64,000 nucleotides of DNA from Epithemia pelagica (GCA_946965045.2 OX337233.1:3100001-3164000), one strand, 5' to 3'; positions 7,963 through 38,119 are shown, numbered from the stretch's first letter. Made by a program: numbers and translations. The notes: generated by a model not told the origin, from the sequence alone.

Positions 7963-8049
7963 ACTTATGGTAACTCATTTCACAACACAATCGATACCAT
8001 CCACAGAAGAATGTGAAAACATGCACAGAAGCTAATGAAGAGATACTAT

Positions 8050-14948: not shown

Positions 14949-15340
14949 AGGTGTCAGTGAAAGTCGTTCTGTATAACCAATAAGGGGGGGGTGGGGGTGG
15001 GGGGGGTGTGTTTCCAACCACCAACAAAGATCATGGGGGATGTCCGAGTGGTATCCGTAATATTTATTTCAGAGAAGTGGTCCCAATAATATACTCCCCA
15101 ACATGTCGGAGTGGTATTCCGTTTATTAAAAAGAGTGACACGTGATGAGGGATAGTATGAGATAGATGTCCATGTGGTACCCACAAACGGCAGCCGACCC
15201 ATTATTCTTCATAAAAAAACAAATACATCTTAGTAGATGTCTCGTCTCTTCTTTTTCTTGAATGTGATAGGTTCATTCTGTTTGATCATCAAGTAATCAT
15301 TTTTACACAAGCGGTGAGATAATACTCTCTAGCTTACGCA

Positions 15341-16612
15341 ATGTTGAGCAATCCATACAAAAAACCACGCACCATGATGAACCCATACAACAAACGCCGA
15401 AAACCACAAAGTACCAAACCACAAAACAAGGGGGTACTTAGTGAAAGCCGTGGAAACAATCTTCATCCAGAAGAAACCCAGTTCCAAAATGACGACGACA
15501 TCACATTTCTCGAGGATTTATTTCAATGGAGAGAAGAGAAATTCCAGAAAGAGAATAAAGGACATCACAAAAATAACAACAGCAACCACGTCGGTGAATT
15601 GGTACCACGAGTAGTAGATGACAGCTCTCCTGAACCAGGTATATCCGTCGAAGGGCATCACGAGAAAACAGAGCCTCCAAAGAAAACAGAGACTCCTGGT
15701 AACGTTGTTGTACCACCATCCATTCCCGATACAACTATCGTTCCTCATACTAATCCCAAGAAAACGGTCATTCGCAATCCATATGCGGTCAAAAGCCGTA
15801 TCATTGACCCCTCTGTGGTCACTGCGAAATTTAAGACAATACCATTGGCTCCAGAATCACCGAGTTATTCTGATCGAGTTGGTGACCGAGATGCAGACTT
15901 TCACCCTGAAGTGGTTAAGTTCACCAGACTTGCCAACGAGGTATTGGGTTCTACAGAGAATATAGCAGATGCCATTTGTCCAGTTTGTTTGTTTCAAGAT
16001 AACCCAACAACCGATTGGTATTTAACAGGAAAATTCTGGCATCCTTTTGGTACTACTCACCGGTGCCGTGACCATTGTTACGGTTGTGGGGTACATTGTG
16101 ATGTATGCGAAACAGGTGGCAATGAATACAAATGCCGACAATGCATTTTCGACCACGATGGGAAACTCCATGATAAACTTGTGGATCGCACATGTACTTA
16201 TATTCCAATCGTATGTAAGGGTTGCCTCCGACCATGCAATTCAAATGGAGAATGTGTCAGTATTCGGGTCTGTTGGAAGTCCAACAATAAATATTTCATA
16301 TGGCGTTTCTGTATGATCGTTCGAAGAGCCTTACTCTTGAATCAATACAGGCCTGACTTGACTTCTGGGGTAGGAGGGATACCCCGATACACACAGGTAG
16401 TCACAGTCAAAGCAGTTCAACAGATGTACAAGGACCTCCGGTACCCCAATGAATCATCACAATTCTCTAGCCCCTTCATACACATGGGAACAGAGGTCGA
16501 GTGGACAAAATGGTTGGTATCAACGTGCTTCGGTCCCTTTTTCAATTACATGGTGTTATTCCGATACTGTTTCCAAGCCATCATGAACCTCAAAGAGAAT
16601 ACCGCGACTTAA
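15341..16612 (+). CDS. Cys/His-rich cargo protein A of unknown function (423 aa)
   Basis: Intact ATG ORF with many CxxC pairs (CPVC, CYGC, CDVC, CRQC, CKGC). Paralogous to the ORF at 23937. Confidence 0.65.
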   Translation: MLSNPYKKPRTMMNPYNKRRKPQSTKPQNKGVLSESRGNNLHPEETQFQNDDDITFLEDLFQWREEKFQKENKGHHKNNNSNHVGELVPRVVDDSSPEPGISVEGHHEKTEPPKKTETPGNVVVPPSIPDTTIVPHTNPKKTVIRNPYAVKSRIIDPSVVTAKFKTIPLAPESPSYSDRVGDRDADFHPEVVKFTRLANEVLGSTENIADAICPVCLFQDNPTTDWYLTGKFWHPFGTTHRCRDHCYGCGVHCDVCETGGNEYKCRQCIFDHDGKLHDKLVDRTCTYIPIVCKGCLRPCNSNGECVSIRVCWKSNNKYFIWRFCMIVRRALLLNQYRPDLTSGVGGIPRYTQVVTVKAVQQMYKDLRYPNESSQFSSPFIHMGTEVEWTKWLVSTCFGPFFNYMVLFRYCFQAIMNLKENTAT

Positions 16613-16616
16613 ATTA

Positions 16617-19600: not shown

Positions 19601-22600
19601 TACCGATGTGGCGTTGTCAATGTCCCAAACTTCCATGGACATGGAGCAAAGACACCCTTCTATAACTTGAATCGCTCCAAATAATGGTAGAGACACTTGG
19701 GGTATCATAGGCATGAATGTCATAAGCTCTGAACTCGTCTATCGCGGACCAAAAGTCTTGTTGTAGACCATACCGGTGTCGCGTTGTCCATGTCCCAAAC
19801 TTCCATGGACATGGGGCAAAGACACCCCTCTATAACTTAAATCGCTCCAAATTTTGGTAGAGACACTTGGGGTATCATAGGCATGGATATCATAGGCTCT
19901 GAACTCGTCTATCGCGGACCAAAAGTCTTGTTGTAGACCATACCGGTGTGGCGTTGTCCATGTCCCAAACTTCCATGGACATGGAGCAAAGACACCCTTC
20001 TATCACTTAAATCGCTCCAAATATTGGTAGAGACACTTGGGGTATCATAGGCATGGATGTCATAGGCTCTGAACTGGTGTATCGTAGACCAAAAGTCTTC
20101 TTGTAGACCATACCGGTGTCGTGTTGTCGATGTCCCAAACTTCCATGGACATGGAGCAAAGACACCCTTCTATAACTTGAATCGCTCCAAATATTGGTAG
20201 AGACACTTGGGGTATCATAGGCATGGACGTCATAGGCTCTGAACTCGTGTATCGCAGACCAAAAGTCTTGTTGTAGACCATACCGGTCTTGCGTTGTCGA
20301 TGTCCCAAACTTCCATGGACATGGAGCAAAGACACCCTTCTATTACTTGAATCACTCCAAATATTGGTAGAGACACTTGGGGTATCATAGGCATGGATGT
20401 CATAGGCTCTGAACTCGTCTATCGTGGACCAAAGGTCTTGTTGTAGACCATACCAGTGTCGCGTTGTAGATGTACCAAACTTCCATGGACATGGAGCAAA
20501 GACACCCTTCTATTACTTGAATCACTCCAAATATTGGTAGAGACACTTGGGGTATCATAGGCATGGATGTCATAGGCTCTGAACTCGTCTATCGTGGACC
20601 AAAGGTCTTGTTGTAGACCATACCAGTGTCGCGTTGTAGATGTACCAAACTTCCATGGACATGGAGCAAAGACACCCTTCTATAACTTGAATCGCTCCAA
20701 ATAATGGTAGAGACACTTGGGGTATCATAGGCATGAATGTCATAAGCTCTGAACTCGTCTATCGCGGACCAAAAGTCTTGTTGTAGACCATACCGGTGTC
20801 GCGTTGTCCATGTCCCAAACTTCCATGGACATGGGGCAAAGACACCCCTCTATAACTTAAATCGCTCCAAATTTTGGTAGAGACACTTGGGGTATCATAG
20901 GCATGGATATCATAGGCTCTGAACTCGTCTATCGCGGACCAAAAGTCTTGTTGTAGACCATACCGGTGTGGCGTTGTCCATGTCCCAAACTTCCATGGAC
21001 ATGGAGCAAAGACACCCTTCTATCACTTAAATCGCTCCAAATATTGGTAGAGACACTTGGGGTATCATAGGCATGGATGTCATAGGCTCTGAACTCGCGT
21101 ATCGTAGACCAAAAGTCTTCTTGTAGACCATACCAGTGTCGTGTTGTCCATGTCCCAAACTTCCATGGACATGGAGCAAAGACACCCTTCTATCACTTAA
21201 ATCGCTCCAAATATTGGTAGAGACACTTGGGGTATCATAGGCATGGACGTCATAGGCTCTGAACTCGTGTATCGCAGACCAAAAGTCTTGTTGTAGACCA
21301 TACCGGTCTTGCGTTGTCGTTGTACCAAATTACCATGGACATGGAGCAAAGACACCCTTCTATAACTTGAATCGCTCCCAATTTTGGTAGAGACACTTGG
21401 GGTATCATAGGAATGGACGTCATAGGCGCTGAACTCGTGTATCGCGGACCAAAAGTCTTGTTGTAGACCATACCGATGTGGCGTTGTCAATGTCCCAAAC
21501 TTCCATGGACATGGAGCAAAGACACCCTTCTATTACTTGAATCACTCCAAATATTGGTAGCGACACTTGGGGTATCATAGGCATGGATGTCATAGGCTCT
21601 GAACTCGTCTATCGTGGACCAAAGGTCTTGTTGTAGACCATACCAGTGTCGCGTTGTAGATGTACCAAACTTCCATGGACATGGAGCAAAGACACCCTTC
21701 TATAACTTGAATCGCTCCAAATAATGGTAGAGACACTTGGGGTATCATAGGCATGAATGTCATAGGCTCTGAACTCGTCTATCGCGGACCAAAAGTCTTG
21801 TTGTAGACCATACCGGTGCCGTGTTGTCCATGTCCCAAACTTCCATGGACATGGGGCAAAGACACCCCTCTTTAACTTGAATCGCTCCAAATATTGGTAG
21901 AGACACTTGGGGTATCATAGGCATGGATATCATAGGCTCTGAACTCGTCTATCGCGGACCAAAAGTCTTGTTGTAGACCATACCGGTGTGGCGTTGTCCA
22001 TGTCCCAAACTTCCATGGACATGGAGCAAAGACACCCTTCTATAACTTGAATCGCTCCAAATATTGGTAGAGACACTTGGGGTATCATAGGCATGGATGT
22101 CATAGGCTCTGAACTCGTGTATCGTAGACCAACAGTCTTGTTGTAGACCATACCAGTGTCGTGTTGTCGATGTCCCAAACTTCCATGGACATGGAGCAAA
22201 GACACCCTTCTATAACTTGAATCGCTCCAAATATTGGTAGAGACACTTGGGGTATCATAGGCATGGACGTCATAGGCTCTGAATTCGTGTATCGCAGACC
22301 AAAAGTCTTGTTGTAGACCATACCGGTCTTGCGTTGTCGTTGTACCAAATTACCATGGACATGGAGCAAAGACACCCTTCTATAACTTGAATCGCTCCAA
22401 ATTTCGGTAGAGTTACTTGGGGTATCATAGGCATGGATATCATAGGCTCTGAACTCGTCTATCGCGGACCAAAAGTCTTGTTGTAGACCATACCAGTGTG
22501 GCGTTGTCGTTGTACCAAATTACCATGGACATGGAGCAAAGACACCCTTCTATAACTTGAATCGCTCCAAATTTCGCTAGAGATACTTGGGGTATCATAG

Positions 22601-23740
22601 GCATGGATATCATAGGCTCTGAACTCGTCTATCGCAGACCAACAGTCTTGTTGTAGACCATACCAGTGTCGTGTTGTCGATGTCCCAAACTTCCATGGAC
22701 AAGGAGCAAAGACACCCTTCTATAACTTGAATCGCTCCAAATTTCGGTAGAGACACTTGGGGTATCACAGGAATGGACGTCATAGACTCTGAACTCGTGT
22801 ATCGTAGACCAAAAGTCTTGTTATAGACCATACCAGTGTAGTGTTGTCAATGTCCCAAACTTCCATGGACATGGAGCAAAGACACCCTTCTATAACTTGA
22901 ATCACTCCAAATTTCGGTAGAGACACTTGGGGTATTATAGGAATGGACGTCATAGGCTCTGAACACGTGTACCATGGACCAAAAGTCTTGTTATAGACCA
23001 TACCAGTGTAGTGTTGTCAATGTCCCAAACTTCCATGGACATGGAGCAAAGACACCCTTCTATAACTTGAATCGCTCCAAATTTCAATAGAGACACTTGG
23101 GGTATCATAGGAATGGATGTCATAGTCTTTGATCTCGTCTATCGCGGACCAAAAGTCTCGTTGTAGGCCATATCAGTATCGCGTTTTCGTTGTCTCAACC
23201 TTCCATGAGGGGTATGGAGCAACAACACCCTTCTATGACTTGAAGCGCTCCAAAATTCGGTACAGACACTTGTGGTATCATAGGCATGGACGTCATAGGC
23301 GCTGAACTCGTCTATCATTGACGTAAATTATTGTTGTAGACCACACCGGTGCGGTGTTGTCCTCGTCCCAATCTTCCATAGACTTTTTGGAGCAAAGACA
23401 TTTTTCTTTTCATCTAATCGACCCAGGTCTTGGTACATATCCTCGGGATATCATAGCCATGTGTACCATAGGCTCTGATCTCATGTGCCGTCAAGACAAA
23501 GACTTGCAATAGATTAGATCGGTTTGGTGTTGTCGTCGTGCCAAAATTGTATGGACATGGAGCAAAGAGATCCTTCTCTTCATGGAATCGGTCCAGATTT
23601 TGGAAGAGACCCATAGTGTCTCATTTTTATGGATACCATAGGATCTGATCTCGTGATATGTGACGAGAAAGGCTTGCAATAGACCATACCGATATAGCGT
23701 TGGCCTTGACATTGTCCAAAAATTTCGTACGCTCATTTCA
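16617..23740. repeat. 170-bp satellite array inside the transposon (about 39 conserved monomers plus a few degenerate ones at the right edge)
   Basis: Monomer ...TCCCAAACTTCCATGGACATGGAGCAAAGACACCCTTCTATAACTTGAATCGCTCCAAAT..GGTAGAGACACTTGGGGTATCATAGG... Track ORFs recur every 170 bp (17918, 18088, 18258). One 102-bp truncated monomer lies near 18540. Copies beyond about 23150 diverge progressively. Confidence 0.97.
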
Positions 23741-23936
23741 TCCTCCATTGATTCGTATGACAAAGCAAACAAGACTCAGAAATTCTTAGCATTATTTGAA
23801 TTTTCCCCATAAAAACGATAAGAACTGAGAGATAGTCAGGATCAGTTGTTTTCTCTGAAGTACATCTTCTTCCAACCGCAAACAGAAATCCTCGTACCAT
23901 TACTCTTCAAGAAGACCGTTCGATATCATATGAAAG

Positions 23937-24813
23937 ATGGAAGACTCGTCTTGGTTGAATACTGTTGCAATATGGAATCTCATCTCGAATACACGATTTG
24001 ATGTTGAAACTTCGTTTTGTCTTCGTAGCAGTGATAGGAATGTTGTTCTCACTGAAGATGTTGCAGCGGCAGCCAAAGGAATCAAAAACGAATTCAAGGA
24101 TCTTGTAGACAAGATTATTAATCACGAGGGACGACTTGATGTGATTTCCATTATGAATGGTAATCAAGAGGGATATACAGAAGAGCACCAGTGTCAGATG
24201 GGCACATGGGCAGACAGACCGGAATTCCTTGACGGACCCTTCATCTGGAAACAAAACTTCCTCGAGACATGTCTTGTTTGCGGTAAATTCACCTGTAATC
24301 AACGGGCAACAATATACACATGCAAACATTGTTTCCGTCCTTTACAAGTACCTGGGTCGTCTTCATCTTGTGATACCACTTGTGCAAAGACTCCCTGTAC
24401 TTCATCCATGAACATGTCCTTCGTATGGGAGTTCTGTATGACTTTAAGAGAGGGATTCCAAGCGTGGTTTGACTTCCACAAGTTTGGAAAAAAACAGAAA
24501 GATTCCCTTTTTTGAATATATCCCAGCCGAATTTTGTGGGATCTTGACAAAAACGGTCGGTAAAGTATGGAGAGAAAAATTGGAGCCTTATTACGACGAG
24601 GATACCAAGTAGCGTAGTCCATCTCATTTCATTCACACCGAGAAACAATGGGCATTGTGGCTGATTTCTTCACCACCTGGTTGCTCCTTTTGCAACTATA
24701 TGCCTATTTTTACTGCATGTTATCACATAGCGCTGGAAAATCCAAAGAAACACGCTGCTGGTGTACCACACCAGAGTGCTCATAAGAAGCAAAAGACGTG
24801 GAATGCTCCTTGA
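23937..24813 (+). pseudogene. Cys-rich cargo protein B, disrupted paralog of 15341-16612
   Basis: IYTCKHCFRP...FVWEFCMTLREG matches PIVCKGCLRP...FIWRFCMIVRRA. After a frame change at the T run (24508-24513) it reads ...K*RSPSHFIHTEKQWALWLISSPPGCSFCNYMPIFTAC, matching SPFIHMGTEVEWTKWLVSTCFGPFFNYMVLFRYC. In-frame TAG at 24610. Confidence 0.7.
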
Positions 24814-24852
24814 ATTTGTTTTTCCTTGGTGATGAATGCATCCAGAAAGAAT

Positions 24853-26841
24853 TTATAATGTTCCGCTACGAATGCCTTGAACCGTTTTGGTTATACCGTG
24901 GTCCTCTCTTGTTTTGTTGACAGTTGCATTCATAGACCTGGAACTTACTGCCCAAAACCAACTAATAGTGTGGTTCTTCATGTTCCCATCTGTATGTTGT
25001 CTTTGTGTGTGTATTGACGTTCCATGCCGGATCACACGTCCATCCCATAGAACCGAAACCCCATGAAATAGTTGTATACAAAGACCATGGTATGTAGTAC
25101 CATCATATTCCACCAGAATATTTGGCAAAACAAAGAACCAATTTTGGGAGTCACCTGGGATTGTCTCTGTCCAGATTGCGAATGAAACAGAACCATCGTG
25201 AACATCATAGTGTGTCGTGTTCATGAGGTTCAAACTCAGGGTAATGGCTGAGGTCATACCTCCGACTCTTCCTCCGAATTCACTAGGCATTTCTTCGCCA
25301 GCTGAATCTTCTAGATACCGGAATGTTGGAATCACCCCAGGATATTCGCGTTCACAGAACCTTTTTGCCGCTGTACTTATTTTCGGCAGTATCATCGATA
25401 ATGTCTTGTCCTTTGTAAATAATTTCTCGGAAACGAAAGTAGAACCGTTTCCTCTTGCCGCAGTATTACCAACAGTAGTCATAGATCCTAAGTCTCCCTT
25501 ATTACATCTGGCATTGGCCGCCTTTCTCAGAGACCCAGTACGTGTAAACTCCCTTGCTCTGTGGTGTAATAGGTCCAACAACGTCTGGTCCTTCCGTAAC
25601 AGGGATGTCACTCGAATGTAACTAAGTGACTCTGGTCTCCCATCATTTCGGCGTGTCTGAACAATGAAAGTAATGTTTCCCCGAATACGATGGTCGTATA
25701 CCAGTGGCCTTGGGTGTGTACCGGACGACATTTGCAACCATAGGTTTCGATGCAAAGCACCACTAACATATCTCCGACTCCCTTTCTTATCTGAGTCATT
25801 CCTGTTTATAATCAGCCTTGTTCGATATTGTTCCCGTGACATGTGATGTGTCATCGACTGTTTATTCCCTGGCTTTTCGATCTTTCCCTTGTCATCGAGG
25901 TACACGTCAGGAGGTAAAAGTGGGCTCCCATTCTCCACATCGGACCATTGGTAACATTCCTTCACAGTTTTGTCATTATTAGTAAGTTGTTCACCCCAAT
26001 CTAGACTCCAACAACGATGAATCTTTTTCAAGAATGCATTACTTGCAGGTTGGCCATCTTTGTGTCGCAGACGTAACCAAGACAATGGTAGTGGGACTGA
26101 TGACGATGTGATGTTGGACGACCTTGATAGTTCTTGAAATTGACGCACACATGTATAAAAAACCCCAGCCAAAGGGAAGAGGATAATGATATCTCTGAAG
26201 AGGTGATCATTTTCGTCAAGACATAAATTTTTGTTAGTCCGAATCATCATGACAGGATCTTCGAATATAGAGGACGACACATGTGTTGTCTTTTTCCTGA
26301 TTTCTCTATATCTTGTCCTCGACAAAGTACATTCCAATATGAATGCATTGTGGATCGTTTTAGTTACAAGACCCACCGGGATTTGAGTAACAATCATAGG
26401 ACAACATTCTGGTATAATGTTCGAATGACTGACAACGTCATCTCTTGTCTCCACAACATCATCCATAGCCTTGTTGTATATTTCTGGGATACGTGCAAAG
26501 ACACTCGGGATATCTTTCATATCGACCTTCCGTTGTATCATCTCCTTTTCGAACGACAAACCAAAACAATCTTGATCGTCGTAACTTCCAAAGCAACGCT
26601 GCAGTAGATGCGATAGCATCCTTATTCGATCGATGTCCTTGTCCAAGACAAAGTAGCACATTCTTTCGTGTGCACTTTCGTTCCGATGCGACATGGCGAC
26701 CACTGTTTCACTTATACGTTGCGTTTTCTTCTTTTCGTACTTGGCATAGGTCTCCTGTGTACATGTGAGTCTCGAAATCGTCTGATCCGATGCCATATCT
26801 TCGAAAGTGGGACGAATATGTTTCTTCTTTATGGATGTCAC
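24853..26841 (-). CDS. TET/JBP-like 2OG-Fe(II) dioxygenase (cargo of the inner element)
   Basis: C-terminal double-stranded beta-helix signature: KGDLGSM..G, N-T-T-H-Y-D-V-H-D (HxD), WFFVLPN, LFHGVSVLWDGRVIRHGTS (distal His). The track ORF starts at GTG; first ATG at 26796. Confidence 0.75.
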   Translation of the reverse strand: MTSIKKKHIRPTFEDMASDQTISRLTCTQETYAKYEKKKTQRISETVVAMSHRNESAHERMCYFVLDKDIDRIRMLSHLLQRCFGSYDDQDCFGLSFEKEMIQRKVDMKDIPSVFARIPEIYNKAMDDVVETRDDVVSHSNIIPECCPMIVTQIPVGLVTKTIHNAFILECTLSRTRYREIRKKTTHVSSSIFEDPVMMIRTNKNLCLDENDHLFRDIIILFPLAGVFYTCVRQFQELSRSSNITSSSVPLPLSWLRLRHKDGQPASNAFLKKIHRCWSLDWGEQLTNNDKTVKECYQWSDVENGSPLLPPDVYLDDKGKIEKPGNKQSMTHHMSREQYRTRLIINRNDSDKKGSRRYVSGALHRNLWLQMSSGTHPRPLVYDHRIRGNITFIVQTRRNDGRPESLSYIRVTSLLRKDQTLLDLLHHRAREFTRTGSLRKAANARCNKGDLGSMTTVGNTAARGNGSTFVSEKLFTKDKTLSMILPKISTAAKRFCEREYPGVIPTFRYLEDSAGEEMPSEFGGRVGGMTSAITLSLNLMNTTHYDVHDGSVSFAIWTETIPGDSQNWFFVLPNILVEYDGTTYHGLCIQLFHGVSVLWDGRVIRHGTSIHTQRQHTDGNMKNHTISWFWAVSSRSMNATVNKTREDHGITKTVQGIRSGTL

Positions 26842-27319
26842 CTCCGCTCTAGGATGTGTGCTTGTCGTTTCCGAACTTCTTGTAGTACAAAGACATAGTT
26901 AGTACGCGGATAGAAATGCCAAATACCTGAAACTAGAATGTCTCTTCTTTTGATCGAGAGTACTAATAATATAAGACTGGTTCCATTGTGGGCAGGGATA
27001 TTTCAGAGGGGTCCCAATTTGAGTTCGTTACATAGATCAACTCGTCTTTGAATGCTCTTTCGATTGGTTCAATATATGCCTCGCCAAATTAAGATATACA
27101 CTTTGAAATATTGGACTAAAGTATGGCCGGCAAAATTTTAGTATTCAAAACCCTAATGTGAGATGTGCTAGAAGGTACGTAAAAACGGTACTGCAGTCGC
27201 GCACGTGAATGACAATAGGGGTATATCGCGCGCATACCGCGCAAAACTTTCAAGCTTGATTTCTCGAAAAGTGGATTTTTCAAATATCCCTGGTGACGAT
27301 GGAATCAGTCTTATATAGA

Positions 27320-30300
27320 TCAGACTTGCCTTTTTGCTTCTGTGTTACTGATCGTGACAGTAGAAGATTCAGTTTGGTCTCTCCTATTCTTCTCCTTTTG
27401 TTGTTTTTTACTCATGAAACGGAGAGTTTCCAACGGTACACGACCCCATGCTGTCTCTGGAAATACAGGGACCGGTCTGTAGAGACCACGATGTTCATCT
27501 TTTGACACGCCAACTTCTTCAACTGAACCATCATGTGCATTGGTGTACGTAATCGAAGCAATATCTCCGTTGCACAAAGGGCAACTCTCGTTCATTTCAG
27601 GAGGTGTCGATTTCTGTTTCCCCATAGGAACTTGTTTTTCGGTGGTAAGGACATGACCAAGACACACCCGACAAAACTTGTGCCCGCATCTCTCGATCCG
27701 ACAGTCGTTAGGACGCTGTCCATGGCATATGGCACAATATTGTTCGGAGTCTTCATCATATTCGTCTAGGACGATTGTCTTGTCTTTCTTCGCGATTAAT
27801 TCTGTCTCATGTAGATCGTGTGGTATTAGCTCAGCATGACTATGACCGCATATGGAACAAAATCGATTCTTCACCGAATTCCGGATGAAAGTACATGTTG
27901 GACAATGATAATGAGGACAGTTGGAGGTTTCTTGCCTTGTCCAACTCACGATAGAAAAGGTCCGACTTCTATCCAGATCCTTTTTAAGCAATGAGGTCCC
28001 ACAAGTGGAACAGAGTGCCTCTTTCTGATCTTCATCGTTCAATGTTCGTACCAGATCCAAGAATCGCCGATCTTCGTGAAGTCGTTCGAGCGCCTTGTCC
28101 GCTTCTGTAATCTCTTGTATCACTTTAATGTCCTCGAATCGTTCATCGTCGGAATCCAGCATATCTTCCATTACCTCCCCTCGATCTTTCCCTTCCATTA
28201 TAAACCGGCGACTGCGTTTGATCCTTGGACGTGTATCGTCATTAACGTCCTTGAAACATACACGCAGAGTCGAATCACGTTTCGCTTTATTGATAGCCGT
28301 ACTCACGATATGATTGCAGGCCTTGTGACATTCTCGCCTACACGATGGCAATTCTTGAGCCCATTTCCCCATCATCTGATCACAGGACATATTAGGGGAC
28401 GCCTTTGACAGGATCTCGTCGATCACACATATGATTGATACTTGGGGAAGCGTACACGCACTTGGTGCCACCGGATTCGGATACTTCTTATAAATGAATC
28501 TCCAGTCACATCCAACGAGCTCTTCCTTTATATCAACGCTCAAGAATGATTGGATTTTCTTTTCGTCGTCCAATAGCCTTAGTTTCCGTAGACATCGAAT
28601 CACTGTAGGCCTCCACGAGCGAATATCCCTTGTCGATAATGGATCGAAAATCAACACTTCTCTTTGATGTGCTTGTAAGAGGATTAAGACGGGATAAAAA
28701 GCTTCATACTTGGTAGTGACGACGACCAATGTAGTATCGGAAGACGACGAACTCAAATCCATTGCAGTCATTGTGTCCATTCTCAGACTATCTTCGTCGA
28801 TTTGCTCAAAGCAAACGGACTTGTTGTGCCATTTATGAACCACCAGCACAAGCATCGACCTGAATATGAGGGGAGGGATCCCCTTAAACTTAGTCGTCTC
28901 TTGAGTATTCGTCCGTAGCAAAAGGTTTCGTCTGTACTGGCGATGTGGGACAAAAAGGACGTCCATTTTCCCATTGTCATGTTGTAGAGAACCATTCTTG
29001 TTGGTACAGCAAGCGTAGGTAAAGACAAATCGCAAAACAACTTCATGGATGCTTCCCTTACGTCTAACGGCACTTTCTTTACAGAGATCCCAAGCTTCAT
29101 TGATCGCTGACATCGACTGTTTGAGGGACCAGTTAGCCATATGAATCAAACGGTCGTTAGTGAAAGATGCAAGGTCGTCTGATGGACCAGGTTTATTCTT
29201 GAGAGGAGGTGGTTGCTTTGGTATTCCTTTAGGTTTGTCGCTACCGTGGTCAACATATGATTTACTTTCCAACAGACCCACCTTTGATTGAGAGGAAGAT
29301 TTTTTTGTCGTCGCTTGTTTTCCTTTTTGTGGTTTCTTTTTCAATGCAAGAGTATCAAAAATGGAACTCCGATCCTCCTCGGTCGCTGACAGAGACTGAG
29401 ATTGTGATTTGCTCTCGTTATTTGAAACAGTGAAAATGGTAGAACTTGTTGCACCATCACATTTACTGTCTGACGCTTGTTTACGGCGTTTCCTGTCTTG
29501 AGATCGTTGTTCATGTCGCCCCTTCTGATACTCCTTCGTCTTTGTAGCGTATTCCCGTTCCATCGTCTGGTAATATGAAATTAGAACCGCCAAATTGGAA
29601 TAGTCGTTCGCGGGATACTTAACAGCTCTTGGTATGTCAAAATAAGGACAAAACCAGCAATCAGGAAGTGTAAGGGCTAATGCTTTTTCAACATCGACTC
29701 CTTCCATTTCATAGGAGTCAGATTCCAATACCCGATACACAGCTGCCATATGTTGAACGCTCCAAACCATTTCTCGGACTGGTATTGTTCTGTCTTTCCG
29801 AAACTTCGATCTATCAGACGTCATGTAGTCCAATATTTTTGCAGCCACGACATTAAGCCGTCTCTCCATCGAATACGAGTTGAGGACAATATCAGCGAGC
29901 ATAGGATGGGCTCCAAGAAACACCTTGAGGGATCGAGTAAAGCTTGCGCTCGACTTTGATCTTGTCGTTGACGGGAATTCCTTGTCCCACAGACGAAGTG
30001 CGTCTCCATATAGAGTTTGTTCGAATAGGTCGATTCCTGGTGAAATAAAACTACCAGCTCCGTCACTCTTGTTTCCCTCTTGTTGTTCTTCGATCGTCTC
30101 TACAAGTCTCAGTATCTTCGGGAAACAAACAGCAGCATGCGAGGCGATATCACTGAAAATACTTGATCCACAGCGCAAGAGGGATACGAATATAGTTTCA
30201 CCTCCATATGTAGTGGAGAAATCTGTCCAATTATCAGTGTTGGAATAAACAGAACGATACCACTCGATTGTATATTCATAACATATCAAGTCTGGGAAAT

Positions 30301-30331
30301 ATCGATCGGAATCTTCTACCGAATCAGCCAT
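27320..30331 (-). CDS. 1003-aa cargo protein with a degenerate Ulp1-like region and two C-terminal RING-like zinc fingers
   Basis: CAIC...RCGHKFCRVC...CPLC is a C3HC4 RING; CSTC...CPHYHCPTC...CSIC is a second finger. VLILLQAHQREVLIFDPLS...SACT resembles the Ulp1/C48 core, but no catalytic His is evident. Confidence 0.65.
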   Translation of the reverse strand: MADSVEDSDRYFPDLICYEYTIEWYRSVYSNTDNWTDFSTTYGGETIFVSLLRCGSSIFSDIASHAAVCFPKILRLVETIEEQQEGNKSDGAGSFISPGIDLFEQTLYGDALRLWDKEFPSTTRSKSSASFTRSLKVFLGAHPMLADIVLNSYSMERRLNVVAAKILDYMTSDRSKFRKDRTIPVREMVWSVQHMAAVYRVLESDSYEMEGVDVEKALALTLPDCWFCPYFDIPRAVKYPANDYSNLAVLISYYQTMEREYATKTKEYQKGRHEQRSQDRKRRKQASDSKCDGATSSTIFTVSNNESKSQSQSLSATEEDRSSIFDTLALKKKPQKGKQATTKKSSSQSKVGLLESKSYVDHGSDKPKGIPKQPPPLKNKPGPSDDLASFTNDRLIHMANWSLKQSMSAINEAWDLCKESAVRRKGSIHEVVLRFVFTYACCTNKNGSLQHDNGKMDVLFVPHRQYRRNLLLRTNTQETTKFKGIPPLIFRSMLVLVVHKWHNKSVCFEQIDEDSLRMDTMTAMDLSSSSSDTTLVVVTTKYEAFYPVLILLQAHQREVLIFDPLSTRDIRSWRPTVIRCLRKLRLLDDEKKIQSFLSVDIKEELVGCDWRFIYKKYPNPVAPSACTLPQVSIICVIDEILSKASPNMSCDQMMGKWAQELPSCRRECHKACNHIVSTAINKAKRDSTLRVCFKDVNDDTRPRIKRSRRFIMEGKDRGEVMEDMLDSDDERFEDIKVIQEITEADKALERLHEDRRFLDLVRTLNDEDQKEALCSTCGTSLLKKDLDRSRTFSIVSWTRQETSNCPHYHCPTCTFIRNSVKNRFCSICGHSHAELIPHDLHETELIAKKDKTIVLDEYDEDSEQYCAICHGQRPNDCRIERCGHKFCRVCLGHVLTTEKQVPMGKQKSTPPEMNESCPLCNGDIASITYTNAHDGSVEEVGVSKDEHRGLYRPVPVFPETAWGRVPLETLRFMSKKQQKEKNRRDQTESSTVTISNTEAKRQV

Positions 30332-30439
30332 ATTAGCGTGCGATTCAATCAGCTTGGGGAAGAAACTAGGAGAAATTTTCTTTCGATGCAGGGTTCCGAT
30401 GCAACTTGATACTACCGTTTCTCAAGCTTGCGTGATGGA

Positions 30440-31620
30440 AACCCTGGAGGGTCTTGGTCGATAGGGATGGAGGAGTGAGGGATATGGGTGTACCAACTTG
30501 ATGTCTCGGTCCTTCCAGTCAAGAATCAGAAGCAAATACAACAATCCAATAGGGTCTTGGTCGATAGAGATAGAAGATAGAAGTATGGGGGCGCACCAAC
30601 TTGGTGTCTCGGCCCTTCAACAGAACCACCAATCAAGATATAGCAATCCAATGGGGTCTTCTTGGTCGATGTAGATGAAGGAGGGATGGAGAGGGGTGCA
30701 CCAACTTGGTGTCTCAGCCCTTGTTCCAATCGGGAAGGAGTAGCAACACAGCAATCCAACAGGGTCTTGGTCGGTGGAGATGGAGGAGTGAAAATTGGGT
30801 GCACCAACTTGGTGTCTTGATCCTTGTTCCAATCGAGAAGGAGAGGCAACACAGCAATCCAAAAGGGTCAAGGTCGATGGAGATGGAGGGGTGAAGGAAA
30901 TGGGTGCACCAACTTGGTGTCTCGGCCTTTGTTCCAATCGGGAAGGAGTAGCAACACGGCAATCCAACACGGTCTTGGTCGATGGAGATGGAGGGGTGAA
31001 GGAAATGGGTGCACCAACTTGGTGTCTCGGCCCTTGTTCCAATCGGGAAGGAGTAGCAACACGGCAATCCAACACGGTCTTGGTCGATGGAGATGGAGGG
31101 GTGAAGGAAATGGGTGCACCAACTTGGTGTCTCGGTCCTTGTTCCAATCGAGAAGGAGTAGCAACACAGCAATCCAACAGGGTCTTGGTCGATGGAAAAG
31201 GAGGGGTGAAGGAAATGGGTGCACCAACTTGGTGTCTTGGCCCTTGTTCCAATTGAGAAGGGGTAGCAACACAGCAATCCAACAGGGTCTTGGTCGATGG
31301 AGATGGAGGGGTGAAGGAAGAGGGTGCACCAACTTGGTGTCTCAGCCCTTGTTCCAATCGGGAAGGATTAGCAACACAGCAATCCAACAGGGTCTTGGTT
31401 GATGGAGATGGAGGGGTGAAGGAAGAGGGTGCACCAACTTGGTGATTTTTGCCCTTTGTTCAATAGAATCCTCACCAATCCGACCGTTCAGATCGTTGAA
31501 AATGGTCTTCTGGGATAATAGGAGGGAAGAAGCAGCGGCAATCCAGCAATCCAACCAGTTTTGGTCGATGGAAATTGATGGGAGAATGAAATGGGTGCAC
31601 CAACTTGGTGTCTTCGCCCT
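30440..31620. repeat. 105-bp tandem repeat, about 8 conserved copies plus degenerate flanks
   Basis: GTGCACCAACTTGGTG anchors at 30696, 30799, 30904, 31009, 31114, 31219, 31324 and 31429. Track ORFs repeat every 35 aa. Confidence 0.93.
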
Positions 31621-32228
31621 TTTTCAAACAGAACCACCAATCCAGTCGTTCAGAGCGTTGAAAATTGTCTTGTGGGATGATAGGAGGGAAGAAATAGTTG
31701 CCAAACAGCGATCACACGGTTGGGTTTTCATGGAAACAGAAGAAAATGATTAGTGGGCATATAGGAAAACGACAAAACGAACTCTCACTGTTGTCTTGTC
31801 GACTTGGCTTACCTAGCACCTTTCCAATTTGAAAAAGGAAATGATTCTCTTTGTGTTCGCCTGTTTGTTGTAGCTGTTGTTGTTGTTGTTGCTGTTGTGT
31901 TGTTGTTGTTGTTGTTGTTGCTGCTGCTGTGTGTTTTTTGGGGCGTTGGGGGTTGGTGTGAGTTGGATGAGGCAGTCTATGACTCTATCGTCAAAAAGTG
32001 ATCACAAAAGTGGGAGAGTATATCTTTTGTGTGGTTGTTGTGTGAGGAAAATCTAATTTTCAGCGTTCTTCTGTGATTTTGTGTCCATTGTTCTTCGTAT
32101 GTCACTGTGACGTGATTTGGTGGTGGAGGAGAAATTTGTGGGTCGCTTTTGGAGTTTACGTGCGACTGGAATACTAGGTGTTATATGTGTAGCTAGTAGT
32201 TAGGTATCTAGGCAAAGGTTAGGCTCTG

Positions 32229-32416
32229 TGCACGCGTTTCCACATACAATAAACATGCTCACGCGGGTGTCAACACGTTTCACGCGTTGTCTACACGTTT
32301 CACGCGCATTAACGCGCAATCTGGAGCGCCACGCGCTTCGTACGCGCCAAATGCGCGTGATCCGTGTTCTGGGGGTGCTGCACGCGCCTATTGGGCGTGT
32401 GTCACGCGCCTATTGG
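32229..32416. repeat. Subterminal CACGCG-type short repeats of the inner element
   Basis: About 10 (C/T/A)ACGCG words, including CACGCGCCTATTGG at 32381 and 32403. Related GTCACGCGCC (7423) and TACGCGCC (about 7452) occur at the left end. Confidence 0.7.
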
Positions 32417-32457
32417 TGGAATTCCAGTCACTTATCTTCAAAAAACCTCCTTAGACG

Positions 32458-35400
32458 TGTGGCAATGAGGTAGTGAGGCTTGTGATGGAAAGTAATCCAC
32501 ACATTGACACAATTACAGGACGTCCTCGTACTCCTCGAGAACAAGGTTCCGTGGAGAATGCAAACAACGGCATTCGGAATACTGTCCAATCGATTGTTTC
32601 GGAGGAATGGGCTCGTGGGAATACGGAGTTCAACTGGACAATGGCACTGGGAAGAGCAATGGGAACATTGAACGGTGCTTTTCGACGGACAACAGCAAAT
32701 ACCATTTCGTCATACGAAACTGTCTTTGGAACCAATTCTACTCTCCCAATTCAGAAGGTGTGAAAGGATTATCTTCAACAGAATTGAGAATAGCCGGGAC
32801 CACAGCGGTTGAACGGTGTCTCCGTACCCGCAGTAGCGCCCTCACAGAAAAATATGCGATTTGTGGTGAAATTACTGAAGCCGACATTGAAGACCTTGGA
32901 GACCTTGCATCGCCAAGAGTGCAATACCTAATGCACAACTATAAACAAACACATAAAGAAGCGGCAGATGACAAGTTCATGCTGATACAAAATTCCGATT
33001 GGTCACTGGTACCTGAAGGTCTTAGACCTATATCAGTTCCAGATGAACATGATATGGTCAGAAAAGGTGAAGAAACTGTGGGCGACTTAGATTCTAAACC
33101 AAAAGCTGTTGATTTGGCCCGAAAACAAAAACATACGGCTACGGCGAATCAAGACAGTGAAGTACCTGACGATGACCTTAATTCCAAACCCAAAGCAGTG
33201 GAAAATCAGACATTCCGAAAGGAGATTGAGAGTCGGAAGACACAGGAACTAGTAAGTTCCTCAGATCTGGCGGGACTGTTGTATTGCCAACCCGTATTGG
33301 CAACCCAAAAAGCAGCCCAACAAGAGATTTCAAAACAGAATACCAAGAAATCATCAAATGACGACAACAAGCCAGATGCAAGTTTTGACGCGTCGGACGG
33401 GAAACAAAATGTTTCGAAACAAGGTGTCGACATATCACAACACAAGGTTCATTTATCAAAACTTCGTTCCGACAAGAAGCCAGATGCAAGTTTTGACGCG
33501 TCGGACGGGAAACAAAATGTTTTGAAACAAGGTGTCGACATATCAAAACACAAGGTTGATTTATCAAAACTTCGTTCCGACAAGGAGCCAGATGAAAGTT
33601 TTGAGGCGTCGGACGGGAAACAAAATGTTTTGAAACAAGGTGTCGACATATCAAAACATGATACGACCATTCTGGAACAAAATCCTGATCTGTCAAAACA
33701 AGATCATAACATGTCGAAAGAAGAGAATGACAGCAGATCAAAACACCAGATTTTACGAAACAATGATCAAGAAGACTCTGGTAATGAGTCTGTCATTGTT
33801 GTTGCAACACCCAAGGGAACACCAGTAACGTCCAAACGGAATGACAATAACCCACTCTTGTCAACAGTTCTAAATGTTCTCGTGAATTCCGATGGTTTCA
33901 GGAACGCACAAGCCGCTGACAAGACATTGCAAGTATTCATGAAGTGTGAGATTTGTCCAGATCTTTTTGTGAATAAAGATGTTCTGTTTAACATCCCATC
34001 TGGCGAGTGCTTGGAGCATTATTTCGGAGAAAATTCAAGACAGTGGCTACCACATTCCCTTGTCCACACATTTGGACAACTTGCATCCCATTGGAATCAC
34101 AGTTCTACAGTGATTTTCTATGCCTGTATGCATAACTTGTCGATGGCAACTTTCTTGGAAATTTCGAAAATTATTGGAGAGATCTCACCTGTTCTGAAGG
34201 ATAATGCAAACATTGATGAAATCATATCATTGGGTTTCACTGGTGACCACTACGCAGTCATCCACATCCTTCTGTCAGAGAAGAGAGCAATTGTCTATGA
34301 CGGAATGGTAACAAGTACAATGGACGTTTGGAAAAATGTTGTGAAATATGTTTTGTGGAAATTTGGAGTCCAAGGATTGGACAACATGGATGAACTTATT
34401 GACGAAAGGACCAAACAGAAAACAGAAGGCATCAAAGACCAATGGACAATATCTCGGGATCAAACAATTAGTGGTATTCAACTTGACACACACTCATGTG
34501 GTCCAATCGCAATGCTAGTAATTGCCTGTTTGTTCCAAACACGACAGAGCAAAATGGACGGCGGGACAAGCCTATCTCAATTGCATCCAGCAAATGTGCC
34601 GTCCAAAAACTGGAGGTCAACAGCGTGCACCTTATTCAAAAAGTTTATTGAATTCACATGGACAAATATGTATTCTGTGAAGACTATACCGACAGCGGAT
34701 CAGCAACATGTGATGGACATTCACATGACCACTCAAATCCGCAACTTTCTAAGTGCTGGACAGAGTGTCCAGAAAGATAAGACTCTGCCTACGAACGATT
34801 TTGTGGAGAAGTCGTCTAAGGTGAAGTCTCCTGCAAAGACCATAAAACAAGCACCTGTGGAACTTAAGACAGTTCCACAAGGTACATCAACAAATCAAGG
34901 AAACACCACTGGAAACAACATAGCACAAACAAAACCAGAGCTTCGGCGTTCCCGAAGAAATCGAACAAATAGGTGAGTATCAAACAAGAACGATACTTTT
35001 AGATCTATAAGTGACGCGTCTGAAAAAAAACCTAGTGATTTATGTATTATGGACGACAATGAAATGCGAACTGACCAACGCAATGAAAATGTGAAGCAAA
35101 GAAGGTTTGATCAATCGTATCAAGCGAGTAAGATGATACGAATGAATAGAAGAGCAGGTTTCAAAGTACATAAGGGACAGTCTGTGGCGTTATTTGCAGA
35201 TCCAAGGGACAGAGCAACCCACAGTAGACTTGGTATCCACTGTCTGATAATTGATGTAACCACGGGTGCATATCCTTCTGTACGATTGGTAATTCCTGAA
35301 GGCATCATTGGAGATAAACAGTCAAAAACATCCATTTGGTTTACACATGATAAATACAACTTACTTGATGCCTCATCACCTCTTGGACCAGAACGGCGTT

Positions 35401-35732
35401 TGTTACGGCAACAGATTTTGGATAAAAGTTTCGATCAAACCAAGTATAAAATCATTTCTGTCCGAGAAGCACATCGTGTTACCTACAGCAAGCATCATTC
35501 TATCAAGAAACAAAAGACAAATTTTGAAAGAAGGAAAACAAAGTGCAATTGCAAACGACTAGGGCTTCAATGCAAGACTAATACTTGTGGATGTCGAAAA
35601 GCTGGAATTGTCTGTACGCATCTGTGTAAATGCAACAAAAGTGATTGCATGAACAGGCATATTCACGGGGTAGTACTGGAAGATGAAGTCAAGGCCGGAA
35701 ATGAGGTACCGAAAAACCAACCCACTGTGTGA
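32458..35732 (+). pseudogene. Ginger transposase, C-terminal part: rve end (Glu), Ulp1/C48 protease and CXC (tesmin/TSO1-like) domain
   Basis: ITGRPRTPREQGSVENAN...NWTMALG completes the rve core. A -1 frame change near 32750 leads into ORF 32607-34976 with GDHYAV, VYDGM and QLDTHSCGP (His/Asp/Gln/Cys of Ulp1). After one TGA (34974) the same frame continues into 35049-35732, ending CNCKRLGLQCKTNTCGCRKAGIVCTHLCKCNKSDCMN. Confidence 0.8.
33370..33660 (+). repeat. 108-bp (36-aa) coding repeat, about 3 copies, in the transposase linker
   Basis: KPDASFDASDGKQNV(S/L)KQGVDIS(Q/K)HKV(H/D)LSKLRSDK repeated. Confidence 0.9.
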
Positions 35733-37477
35733 CCAATTGTTCCATCGAAACCAAAGGCACACTCATGTTTGGAAGTGCAATGACGGATGACACGACCATC
35801 GAATAGAATTGTCACGCCATGTGATAATTCAATCACCAGGCCATTATAAGTACGGCCATCTCTTTTCAGCAGAACATCTGGAAAAATGAAAAACCAGTTC
35901 TTTGTAGTATGTGGCATGGTTTCGGAAAATACAACGAAGCAAACACTAGCGTCGTTGATATCAACATGGGATGAGTTTTCCAAATCAACACTTACTGCGA
36001 TGTTGGAACAAAATCCGTCTGTCCCACCCAAATCTTGAGGGACATCAATATCTGCCTGTTTACGTAAAGATGTAAACAAGGGCAATATTCCCGGATAGTG
36101 TTGTTGAATTCTTGTCCCAACCGTGGAGCATAACTGCCCTACATTATTGTTGAGTGATGTATTGTCCATGGAGATTGGTATTGATTTTAATTGTTGCTGA
36201 TAACGGTGGAACGTGATTCCATACCCACTCATTTGTCCGTTGTCTCCTGTGTTTCTCCTGGAGTTCCCACAGCTTGAAACATTCTTGTCTGAGACATATA
36301 AGTTTGCCACAGAAGCAAAGTCATGATAAAGCTTCTCAGACGATGATACATAGGACACGACAATGTAGGATTGTCCAACTGGCCGTTTGTTGCTGTCCAA
36401 AATAGTAGTCTGGAATGCGTGGAATCGTCTTTCTTCAGATCTTGGGTTTAAAATATAGGCCGAGGAACCACGGATGGAACGATACAGTGCACCAGTGACA
36501 TATCTGCGACAGCCAATTTTATTGGATCCTGACTTTTCAAATAAAGCACGGTAAAATGTACGGCGATCTTGGATTTTGTTAATAATGTTGTCACCGATAC
36601 AGTCAGGTGGTAGAAGAGGAGTATCAACATCACCGTCGTCAAATTGAATGCTGTGAATAACTTTGGGCAATTCGTTGGAAACAACATAATTGATTGTCCA
36701 TACTCTGTTTATAGACTTGATGAAGCTTCCCAACGCTGGTTCACCAGTTGTATAAACAAGACGTAACCAGGAAAGTGGTAATGGAGTAAGTGACGAAGTG
36801 GTGATAGATTTGCCAATGCCACACTGTAGTTCACAAAGAAATTTGGAATTGTCCGAGGTAAAGGCAGTTGTCCAAAATACTGATGCATAGGGGAAAATAA
36901 TTATGACGGTGCGAAAAATGTGATCAAATTCAGTAGAACAGAGTTCCCTGGAGGTTCGTGTACGGTGTATCACTTCGTAGTAGGGTTGGTTGTACGGAAT
37001 TCTTGGTTTACGGTGTGTCCTGGACAATGTACAGTCAAGCATGAATGCACCATGCAATTCATGTGTAAGCTGTAAAGGAATGGCTTCCTGTATTCGTAGG
37101 TCATGATGTGATATTGATGAACGTGTCAACTGTAGTTCTTTAAATCCCCGCTTGATTTCTTTGATGAAAATATGAATATGAGGGACACTTGGAACAGATT
37201 TAAGGTACGGCAAACTGTGTTGGATGAAGGCTTGTTGAACATCATCCCCTGGTAGACACAGGGAGAACATTTCACAGAGAAGTAATGTGAAGTCGTCAGT
37301 ATCAAAGCAGTATGGCTCATGTCGGATAGAAGTCTGAGCGGATTGATACACATGAATGATTCCTGGAGGTCGGTTGCGACGAGAAGAGTTGCTCTTATGC
37401 TTGGATGAAGTCTTTGTCTTCTTCATGATGGACGTATGAAGGGAGGCTGTCAACGATTCGATGAAGCGAAAGAACAA
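35663..37477 (-). CDS. TET/JBP-like 2OG-Fe(II) dioxygenase (cargo of the Ginger element), convergent with the transposase
   Basis: TGDNGQM..YG, N-S-S-H-V-D-I-N-D (HxD), WFFIFPD, LSHGVTILFDGRVIRHCTS. Shares blocks with 24853-26841 over most of its length. Likely ATG at 37426. Confidence 0.75.
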   Translation of the reverse strand: MFFRFIESLTASLHTSIMKKTKTSSKHKSNSSRRNRPPGIIHVYQSAQTSIRHEPYCFDTDDFTLLLCEMFSLCLPGDDVQQAFIQHSLPYLKSVPSVPHIHIFIKEIKRGFKELQLTRSSISHHDLRIQEAIPLQLTHELHGAFMLDCTLSRTHRKPRIPYNQPYYEVIHRTRTSRELCSTEFDHIFRTVIIIFPYASVFWTTAFTSDNSKFLCELQCGIGKSITTSSLTPLPLSWLRLVYTTGEPALGSFIKSINRVWTINYVVSNELPKVIHSIQFDDGDVDTPLLPPDCIGDNIINKIQDRRTFYRALFEKSGSNKIGCRRYVTGALYRSIRGSSAYILNPRSEERRFHAFQTTILDSNKRPVGQSYIVVSYVSSSEKLYHDFASVANLYVSDKNVSSCGNSRRNTGDNGQMSGYGITFHRYQQQLKSIPISMDNTSLNNNVGQLCSTVGTRIQQHYPGILPLFTSLRKQADIDVPQDLGGTDGFCSNIAVSVDLENSSHVDINDASVCFVVFSETMPHTTKNWFFIFPDVLLKRDGRTYNGLVIELSHGVTILFDGRVIRHCTSKHECAFGFDGTIGHTVGWFFGTSFPALTSSSSTTP

Positions 37478-37543: not shown

Positions 37544-38119
37544 AAACGATGAAAAATGATAGAAAAAATATGGGGATTTTGTTTTAATTTGATATGCCGG
37601 CGAACAACAAATCAAAACATGACGACGTTTTAATAATTTTCAACAAATCAGCGCAAAGTTTTGATTTGCCGTTTGCGTCGAAATCTCGGGTAACAGATTC
37701 GGCCACGACCCCTTCCTTGACTCCCTCAAAGCTACCAACCACAAAGTCGTCATTCCACCTATCTTGTCAGTGGGTGTGACTGTCCCTGTCACCGTTTGGA
37801 TGAATGTCCCACGAGTATTAATAACGGAGATGTTGGGAATGCCACGACAATGGAATGATGACCAGTCCACCGTCCATGTCCTGCATTCCACTCCCTTCAA
37901 CTCGGGCCGTCCAGGAGTAACTGAAAGGAGGGGCTTGGGCCAGGGAGTGTCGCATTGCTAACAAACCAAGACGCACACTCATGATAAGGCAACTCCATCT
38001 ACTAGTAGCAGCGATTCTGTTAACTCCACGTATGTACGAAAAGCAGCAATGTCATTCTCGCCAATTTGCGTCCTGTAGCCAAACTATTTTGCAGAACCGT
38101 CATTGGTTGGAACGTCCTC

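Follow-up and report, generated by a model that had tools for sequence, protein, structure and literature searches.

TET-fold dioxygenase-like genes carried by nested Plavaka-like and Ginger-like transposons in a non-fungal alga, Epithemia pelagica

Introduction

TET/JBP dioxygenases encoded by fungal transposons were reportedly described by Iyer et al. in 2014, and, to our knowledge, transposon-borne TET enzymes have been thought to be a fungal peculiarity. Here we analyze a stretch of 64,000 nucleotides from Epithemia pelagica (GCA_946965045.2 OX337233.1:3100001-3164000; the whole stretch is hereafter called the window), in which two TET-fold Fe(II) dioxygenase-like open reading frames (ORFs), ORF A and ORF B, each sit in a transposon of their own, the two transposons being unrelated and one nested in the other.

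In fungi, TET-carrying transposons comprise ten carrier lineages, Plavaka included, with transfers between superfamilies and with an oxygenase of the ‘PE type’ that is recognizable by structure alone (Kojima, 2025, PMC12730594). Neither Ginger transposons nor diatoms are mentioned in that paper, and the absence of Ginger from the published list of TET-carrying transposons agrees with the remark in an earlier note on this stretch, made from the sequence alone, that no such Ginger element was known. A full-text literature search for TET/JBP together with diatom or stramenopile found no report. Plavaka elements have a 2-bp target duplication, and their published termini are of the PlavakaA and PlavakaB types (Kojima, 2025, PMC12730594). 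Ginger elements are defined by TGTNR termini (the Ginger/Gypsy pattern), 4-bp duplications and a Gypsy-integrase-like transposase; many Ginger1 families possess a C-terminal Ulp1 domain, an OTU tail being the alternative in Ginger1 (Bao, Kapitonov and Jurka, 2010, PMC2836005).

Results and Discussion

The Two Oxygenase Genes Reside in Nested Transposons

The features that define the nested arrangement are as follows (window coordinates).

5205..5208, no strand: target-site duplication GATT, left side of the Ginger-like element; the same GATT at 37696-37699
5209..5235, plus strand: left terminal inverted repeat of the Ginger-like element, beginning TGTTAC; homology of the window, L003 and L004 ends there
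7409..32457, minus strand: Plavaka-like (CMC) DNA transposon, TG duplication at 7407-7408 and 32458-32459 (empty site in L004; L001)
24853..26841, minus strand: ORF A, the TET-fold Fe(II) dioxygenase-like gene that the Plavaka-like element carries (homology, AlphaFold2, Foldseek, VIA-align, iron-binding triad)
35663..37477, minus strand: ORF B, the TET-fold Fe(II) dioxygenase-like gene that the Ginger-like element carries (homology, sister copies, clade support)
37669..37695, minus strand: right terminal inverted repeat of the Ginger-like element, followed by GATT at 37696-37699 (copy comparison)

Both ORFs are open and lie where the earlier note had placed them, comprising 662 (ORF A) and 604 (ORF B) codons from the mechanical start. 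Translation probably begins at internal ATGs; in public gene calls ORF A has 647 amino acids and the sister of ORF B has 593. The element boundaries were fixed by comparing copies in the same assembly (ENA ERZ21939226), with L003 and L004 for the Ginger-like element and L004, L002 and L001 for the insert; a short-word BLAST between the flanks for inverted ends gave nothing usable, and the ends came from the copy comparison.

The Ginger-like element with ORF B occupies window positions 5209-37695, its own length being 7.4 kb without the insert. The Plavaka-like insert of 25,049 bp (7409-32457) carries ORF A and splits the Ginger-like transposase gene. Bases 15002-15003 of L004, where the 7.4-kb element is uninterrupted, have two counterparts in the window, 7407-7408 and 32458-32459, and consequently 7409-32457 is a single insertion accompanied by a 2-bp TG duplication. 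The insert has 9-bp inverted ends (CGTCTAAGG), and its copy L001, located on a different contig, terminates at the same base and is likewise preceded by TG. Across the junction, the diverged, unbroken L002 transposase reads ...DNGPEV-S-GNEII..., and the window reads ...DNGNEV-C / C-GNEVV... (the slash marks the insert); excision of the insert in silico restores the frame (...NEV-C-GNEV...), as in L002. The insertion point therefore lies two codons past the DNGxE motif, with the catalytic glutamate, of the integrase core. The ORF A element landed within the ORF B element. The nesting and the dead Ginger transposase, both asserted earlier, are thereby confirmed by an empty site and exact boundaries, and the proposed CMC/Plavaka-like and Ginger-like carriers are supported by termini, duplications and transposase features.

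The duplications and the empty site, together with the existence of multiple copies, rule out that the two ORFs are host genes instead of transposon cargo.

Homology, Copies and Phylogeny of the Oxygenases

ORF A and ORF B are 31% identical over 613 columns (BLASTP, E 6e-85), and every collinear block that the earlier note had listed is visible in this alignment (among them CTLSRT, PLPLSWLRL, PLLPPD, RRYV.GAL, GD.G.M, HxD..D, NWFF and HGV..L.DGRVIRH.TS), which excludes chance homology. The pair shows a nonsynonymous divergence (dN) of 0.76 with saturated synonymous sites and falls into separate, well-supported clades; the homology is real and old, and, as had been supposed, does not reflect a recent duplication.

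An exhaustive profile search revealed 745 relatives at E<=0.001, 103 of them at E<=1e-30. The 90% cluster of ORF A contains 23 members on different large contigs, while the ORF B-type clusters contain 8, 5, 3, 13 and 10 members. The ORF B sisters in L003 and L004 are 98% identical, and each gene layout is retained in lineages that are just 37-58% identical. Other copies keep the gene as well, the oxygenase being present in L001, L002, L003, L004, L007 and L008.

A tree of 49 rows groups the Ginger-borne oxygenases together (SH-aLRT support 100) and, separately, ORF A with its relatives (96); the two clades fall inside a 21-row clade (99) without being sister groups. Branching between them are sequences from metagenome contigs of 1-2.4 kb (P0006, P0008, P0022) without gene context. 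The tree is consistent with cargo that has long resided in each superfamily and with at least one transfer in the distant past or, alternatively, a separate capture. Movement of the cargo between superfamilies, as the earlier note proposed, is plausible; however, the two clades lack a sister relationship, and the 49-row tree revealed neither a donor nor a direction nor a paralogue in the host. Two further relatives, P0112 and P0142, are fused to DEAD-box helicase domains (DEAD, Helicase_C), and these fusions would point to a nucleic-acid substrate of the family.

Predicted Fold and Family Membership

Neither ORF matched any Pfam family in hmmscan at E<=1, and a phmmer search of the ORFs against PDB sequences gave no match. 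The AlphaFold2 prediction made with a 4-sequence alignment was useless (predicted local distance difference test, pLDDT, 32); a 115-sequence alignment was used instead, and the resulting model of ORF A residues 140-645 had a pLDDT of 90.8 and a predicted template modeling (TM) score of 0.92. In this model the double-stranded beta-helix fold is closest to solved TET-type enzymes: Foldseek ranked TET2 first (2e-11), followed by CMD1 (4e-10), CcTet (2e-8) and NgTET1 (2e-6; TM 0.56 by target), and then by FTO, while VIA-align returned Z scores of 19.3 for TET2, 16.6 for CMD1 and 16.2 for both CcTet and NgTET1. The top 16 VIA-align entries were all TET-type, and the next family (AlkB/FTO, with ALKBH3 and FTO) scored at most 11.6. 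Neighbors in the AlphaFold database belonged to fungal ‘Tet-like 2OG-Fe(II) oxygenase’ (PF20515) and ‘JBP1/TET’ clusters; those in the language-model Atlas included phage Tet_JBP, fungal PF20515 and an unnamed cluster, the known members of which are mostly Bacillariophyta.

Taken together, the predicted structure supports a TET/JBP-type fold with an intact iron site for the family of ORF A and ORF B. The TET/JBP identity suggested earlier is therefore upheld in part: fold and motifs agree with it, but the Pfam models PF12851 and PF20515 do not match, so that the assignment rests on fold and motifs and not on a family model.

A generic 2-oxoglutarate (2OG) oxygenase was also considered and was ruled out by the gap in Z scores between the TET group and all other structures.

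Selection on the Oxygenase Genes

Comparison of ORF A with its counterpart in L001 gave a ratio of nonsynonymous to synonymous divergence (dN/dS) of 0.13, with 15 synonymous and 7 non-synonymous changes, and that of ORF B with L003 and L004 gave 0.11-0.12. In the young copies coding and non-coding parts are alike 98-99% identical; hence the values between diverged Ginger-borne lineages (0.105-0.113; hundreds of substitutions, synonymous divergence near saturation) constitute the stronger evidence. These results support purifying selection on both oxygenases, the ratio being about 0.11-0.13 and not about 1.

One could argue that the oxygenases are passengers or decaying genes without present function, open merely since the copies are young. 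The window copies do differ by only 1-2% from their sisters, leaving little time for changes, and both transposases at this locus are broken, the Ginger-like one split and the Plavaka-like one frameshifted, next to two oxygenase ORFs that are intact, as the earlier note had observed. However, ORFs stay full-length at the low inter-lineage ratios given above across 49-58% protein identity, the catalytic residues are invariant in 115 relatives, and the deletion derivative L003 lost 1.5 kb of the transposase and retained ORF B. We regard the passenger explanation, already disfavored, as highly improbable.

Active Site and Proposed Role

Residues were placed in ORF A numbering, over the 115 sequences, by motif spacing and predicted strands and not by superposition. 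Conservation at the principal positions was as follows.

H544: 115/115
D546: 115/115
D549: 114/115
H606: 112/112
R445: 113/114

The iron-binding triad HxD...H is present, and the same residues occur in ORF B. By motif position, D549 is the Asp/Asn three residues past HxD, which in related enzymes reads the cytosine N4 (CMD1 D350, TET2 N1387, NgTET1 D234; PMC7854593). The carboxylates of 2OG are bound by two arginines (R1261 and R1896 in TET2, R224 and R289 in NgTET1), the second of which lies six residues ahead of a stacking aromatic residue (Rx5-aromatic; PMC7854593). R445 is a candidate for the first of them, and two further arginines, R602 (94/111) and R605 (101/112), flank the distal histidine H606. 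By this placement, the metal site and the base-reading Asp are TET-like, but the arginine for the C5-carboxylate appears to be missing.

We consider it fairly probable that both ORFs encode Fe(II) oxygenases which oxidize a modified base, most likely 5-methylcytosine (5mC), and so counter transposon silencing. The active enzymes would flip the base out of the DNA of the element or of its surroundings and oxidize it, the oxidation would remove or mask the methylation that silences transposons, and copies keeping the oxygenase gene would spread better. Such an anti-silencing mechanism is what we reasonably infer, as distinct from what we found. In the model diatom 5mC is confined to transposons (PMC12344493). 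Action of the oxygenases in trans is conceivable and would account for the intactness of both next to one split and one frameshifted transposase. Their co-substrate may be bound otherwise than in canonical TETs, since the C5-carboxylate arginine appears to be exchanged.

Several points weigh against this proposal. Relatives act on 5mC, thymine or N6-methyladenine (6mA), and CMD1 uses vitamin C. Six residues ahead of the conserved F629, where the last predicted strand begins, N623 (75/101) is found, and an adjoining Arg occurs in only 7 sequences; the canonical arginine for the C5-carboxylate of 2OG appears to be replaced by a mostly conserved Asn. None of the 63 aligned members (the two ORFs and 61 relatives) matched the Pfam 2OG/Tet models, including PF12851 and PF20515, at E<=0.01, and two family profiles (A2, A3) searched against the PDB found no chain at E<=10. 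Purifying selection among copies shows that the gene matters for spread, not what the gene does. Finally, the sequencing runs containing the locus (X1-X3) are of genomic DNA only, with contigs up to 0.5 Mb.

The apparent replacement of the C5-carboxylate arginine speaks for another explanation, according to which the TET-fold oxygenases make some other DNA modification (JBP-like thymine hydroxylation, CcTet-like 6mA demethylation or a CMD1-like adduct formed with a co-substrate other than 2OG) and thereby mark or protect the element instead of erasing 5mC. CMD1 is the second-best structural match, its C5-site arginine does not bind the co-substrate, and this failure to reach the pocket goes with vitamin C use (PMC7854593); moreover, CcTet structures with 6mA DNA are among the matches. 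On the other hand, D549 corresponds to the residue reading cytosine N4 in CMD1 and NgTET1, and the conserved R602 and R605 beside the distal histidine could supply the missing charge. We deem this explanation possible, if on the unlikely side. A more far-reaching proposition, which we hold to be quite doubtful, is that the family represents a new TET-fold branch with a rebuilt co-substrate site (Asn for the C5-carboxylate Arg), which, like CMD1, would yield a product other than 5-hydroxymethylcytosine or use a co-substrate other than 2OG, and which, as shared cargo, would have spread through two or more transposon superfamilies in an alga outside the fungi.

The Ginger-Like Element

Beside ORF B and the termini, the Ginger-like element contains three annotated features.

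6192..7408, plus strand: Ginger-like transposase, N-terminal part with H2C2 zinc finger and the DDE core as far as DNGNEV (Pfam, L002, L004)
32607..34976, plus strand: C-terminal part of the Ginger-like transposase, Ulp1 (C48) protease-like (Peptidase_C48; L004)
35049..35732, plus strand: Cys-rich (CXC-like) accessory gene, 227 amino acids (weak TCR/CXC match; L002, L004, L007)

The termini (TGTTAC/TGTTA) form an imperfect inverted repeat of about 27 bp, and homology between the window, L003 and L004 stops exactly at them. The 4-bp GATT duplication flanks the window element and is also found around L003, which has a different host context. TGTNR termini, inverted repeats and a 4-bp duplication, the features expected of Ginger, are thus all present, and no reverse transcriptase or long terminal repeat was found inside the element.

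The N-terminal part of the window transposase matches Pfam Integrase_H2C2 (E 4e-4) and is 60% identical (E 4e-120) to residues 158-445 of the unbroken L002 transposase, in which the motifs HxxxxH..CxxC and D, D, DNGxE are legible. The C-terminal part, 97% identical to L004, matches Peptidase_C48 with E 7e-4, below the Pfam cut-off. In L004 the Ulp1-like tail continues the integrase ORF without interruption, and Integrase_H2C2 (E 3e-4), rve (E 0.012) and Peptidase_C48/Ulp1 (E 0.002) follow each other in the canonical order, each match being under the Pfam cut-off.

The Cys-rich gene, with a weak TCR/CXC match (E 0.034), is convergent with ORF B and overlaps it by 70 nt at the 3′ ends; it occupies the same position in L002 (60%), L004 and L007 (50%), with E from 1e-73 to 1e-95. 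These three loci share the arrangement of transposase, then CXC gene, then convergent oxygenase, their oxygenases being 49-58% identical to ORF B. The ORF B region recurs in L003 and L004 at 97-99% identity, the two copies lying in different host contexts. All of this supports the identification of the ORF B element as a Ginger-like cut-and-paste transposon.

At positions 10000-21000 of L002 a complete diverged Ginger-like element adjoins an inverted partial one, which places their oxygenase genes in a face-to-face arrangement; the same locus has a copia-type RVT_2 gene at its end.

The Plavaka-Like Element and the RING ORF

Leftward from its right terminus the insert contains a minisatellite, the RING ORF, a MITE-like (miniature inverted-repeat transposable element-like) insert, ORF A, a satellite, a 423-aa ORF and the transposase. 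Its features other than ORF A are listed below.

10822..14948, plus strand: Plavaka-like transposase gene in two overlapping frames, 10822-13302 and 13152-14948 (P0184, P0185, P0189)
16617..23740, no strand: 170-bp satellite array (repeat scan from 18000; blastn to L001)
26974..27312, no strand: MITE-like insertion, about 339 bp long and bounded by inverted ends of 35 nt (inverted repeat; missing from L001)
27320..30331, minus strand: RING-finger ORF, 1003 amino acids, directly upstream of ORF A (weak RING matches; pairing kept)
30448..31461, no strand: 105-bp minisatellite upstream of the RING ORF (periods 105/210/315 bp; also in L001)

The two transposase frames are collinear with the single 1285-aa protein P0184 and its 98% identical sibling P0185. 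The window has 95 nt (13057-13151) where P0185 has 32 codons (96 nt), which amounts to a one-base frameshift; it could be an assembly error instead of a real defect. The window transposase ORFs gave no direct Pfam match at E<=1, and their homologue P0189 (E 3.7e-24; tblastn 1e-30) matches Pfam Plavaka PF18759 with 38.9 bits at a cut-off of 26.3. The language-model Atlas features place both transposase halves near Plavaka/DUF6830 clusters (scores 0.94, 0.93 and 0.91), the second half having DUF6830/Plavaka neighbors. Eight of the 10 window copies of the subterminal motif ACGCGC lie within the two 600-bp ends of the element. Accordingly, short inverted ends (9 bp), a duplication in the 2-3-bp range (TG) and subterminal repeats (ACGCGC) are all present, and the sequence features support the classification of the ORF A element as a putative Plavaka-like CMC transposon.

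In the part scanned from 18000, the satellite comprises 30 copies at 170-bp spacing, which are 90-98% alike. The array is about 7 kb long, and the blastn match to L001 covers 16624-23710; as an array of similar length is found in this sister copy too, the Plavaka-like element carries and spreads a nucleosome-sized satellite. The minisatellite shows higher-order periods of 210 and 315 bp, and L001 has the same repeat in a different copy register. None of three more ORFs of the element (8776-10382 and 15341-16612; 204, 307 and 423 amino acids) matches Pfam. L001 has the 423-aa ORF at 99.2% identity, and an exact look-up of the ORF sequence found nothing.

The RING ORF has two weak RING matches (E 8e-5 and 1e-3). 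RING and oxygenase genes are adjacent on the same strand in L001, with a 134-bp spacer, and in the diverged L008, where the RING gene matches zf-C3HC4; L008 also contains a Plavaka-like transposase fragment, so that RING, oxygenase and Plavaka transposase occur together in both loci. In the window the MITE-like element is inserted in the 134-bp spacer; neither L001 nor one genomic contig of run X2 contains it. The spacer (window 26842-27319; L001 9861-10000) is intron-like, with a GT overlapping the RING stop codon and a TACTAAC box. Several AG sites in it restore the ORF A frame, as do many GT..AG pairs. A RING-oxygenase fusion through splicing is possible, in which case ORF A would be a downstream exon of the RING gene.

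The presence of a ubiquitin/SUMO-type domain in each element (RING by ORF A, Ulp1 in the Ginger transposase) allows for an explanation in which the oxygenase serves transposition or host manipulation through a non-DNA substrate, by RNA or protein hydroxylation perhaps coupled to the RING/Ulp1 functions, and not counter-defense; the lack of matches to Pfam nucleic-acid oxygenase models also speaks in its favor. But DNA-base oxygenases make up all of the best 16 structural matches, with prolyl hydroxylases reaching only Z ~10, and the helicase fusions in the family indicate nucleic acids; besides, Ulp1 is a common transposase appendage in elements without an oxygenase (PMC2836005). A non-DNA substrate is improbable in our judgment, and oxidation of a modified DNA base in the service of anti-silencing is the reading that we prefer.

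Sequences Adjoining the Ginger-Like Element

To the right of the Ginger-like element (38100-44400), fragments of protein-kinase-like genes occur as decayed duplicates in inverted orientation (inverted repeats of 105-170 nt, 70-85% alike), and a sulfotransferase-like ORF follows at 47456-49477.

Comparison With Known Systems

TET-fold cargo in Ginger-like and Plavaka-like elements outside fungi would suggest that, wherever mobile DNA is silenced by 5mC, carriage of a base oxidase is a counter-measure to which transposons resort generally and repeatedly, and it may help to account for the continued activity of large transposon families in genomes where they are methylated. An enzyme family with an apparently altered co-substrate site could also add new DNA-modifying chemistry and tools.

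Among solved enzymes, TET2, NgTET1 and CcTet are the best structural matches (Z 15.5-19.3), and the ORF A/ORF B family shares with them the HxD...H triad and the Asp/Asn three residues past HxD; an Arg ~100 residues upstream may correspond to R1261 of TET2. It differs from them in its low sequence identity (8-14%), with no sequence-profile matches, in an extra conserved N-terminal region (the CTLSRT and PLPLSWLRL blocks) and, relative to TET2 and NgTET1, in the apparent Asn at the position equivalent to R1896/R289, as placed by motif spacing. CMD1 of Chlamydomonas, an algal TET homologue which converts 5mC to 5-glyceryl-methylcytosine, is comparable as the second-best structural match (Z 16.6), and its arginine that does not contact the co-substrate parallels the arginine that appears to be missing here. 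Unlike the present genes, CMD1 is a host gene and not transposon cargo, and it keeps an alignable Arg410; vitamin C is its co-substrate, whereas no result of this analysis points to vitamin C use.

Regarding the carriers, the ORF B element resembles Ginger1 and Ginger2 (PMC2836005) in the TGTNR termini, the 4-bp duplication and the combination of a putative H2C2 finger, DDE core and C-terminal Ulp1 domain. It differs in the target (GATT here, CCGG/CCGT there), in the two extra genes (CXC and oxygenase) and in a host outside the animals and the fungus listed in that paper; the Pfam integrase matches here are under threshold. The ends of the ORF A element (CGTCTAAGG) are unlike those of the published PlavakaA and PlavakaB (TGT..ACA or CATCA..TGATG).

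A close parallel is with the TET-carrying transposons of fungi: in both cases TET-fold cargo is found in cut-and-paste elements of unrelated superfamilies, Plavaka among them, related oxygenases occur in different superfamilies, and the proposed role is escape from methylation silencing. Like the ‘PE type’ of Kojima, the family described here is recognized by structure only. Unlike in the fungal systems, the host is not a fungus, the Ginger carrier is outside the ten published lineages, the oxygenase is linked to a RING gene, and the family matches neither PF12851 nor PF20515. The principle is thus already known, and what is new is the host group, the Ginger carrier, the RING linkage and a divergent enzyme family with an apparently altered co-substrate site.

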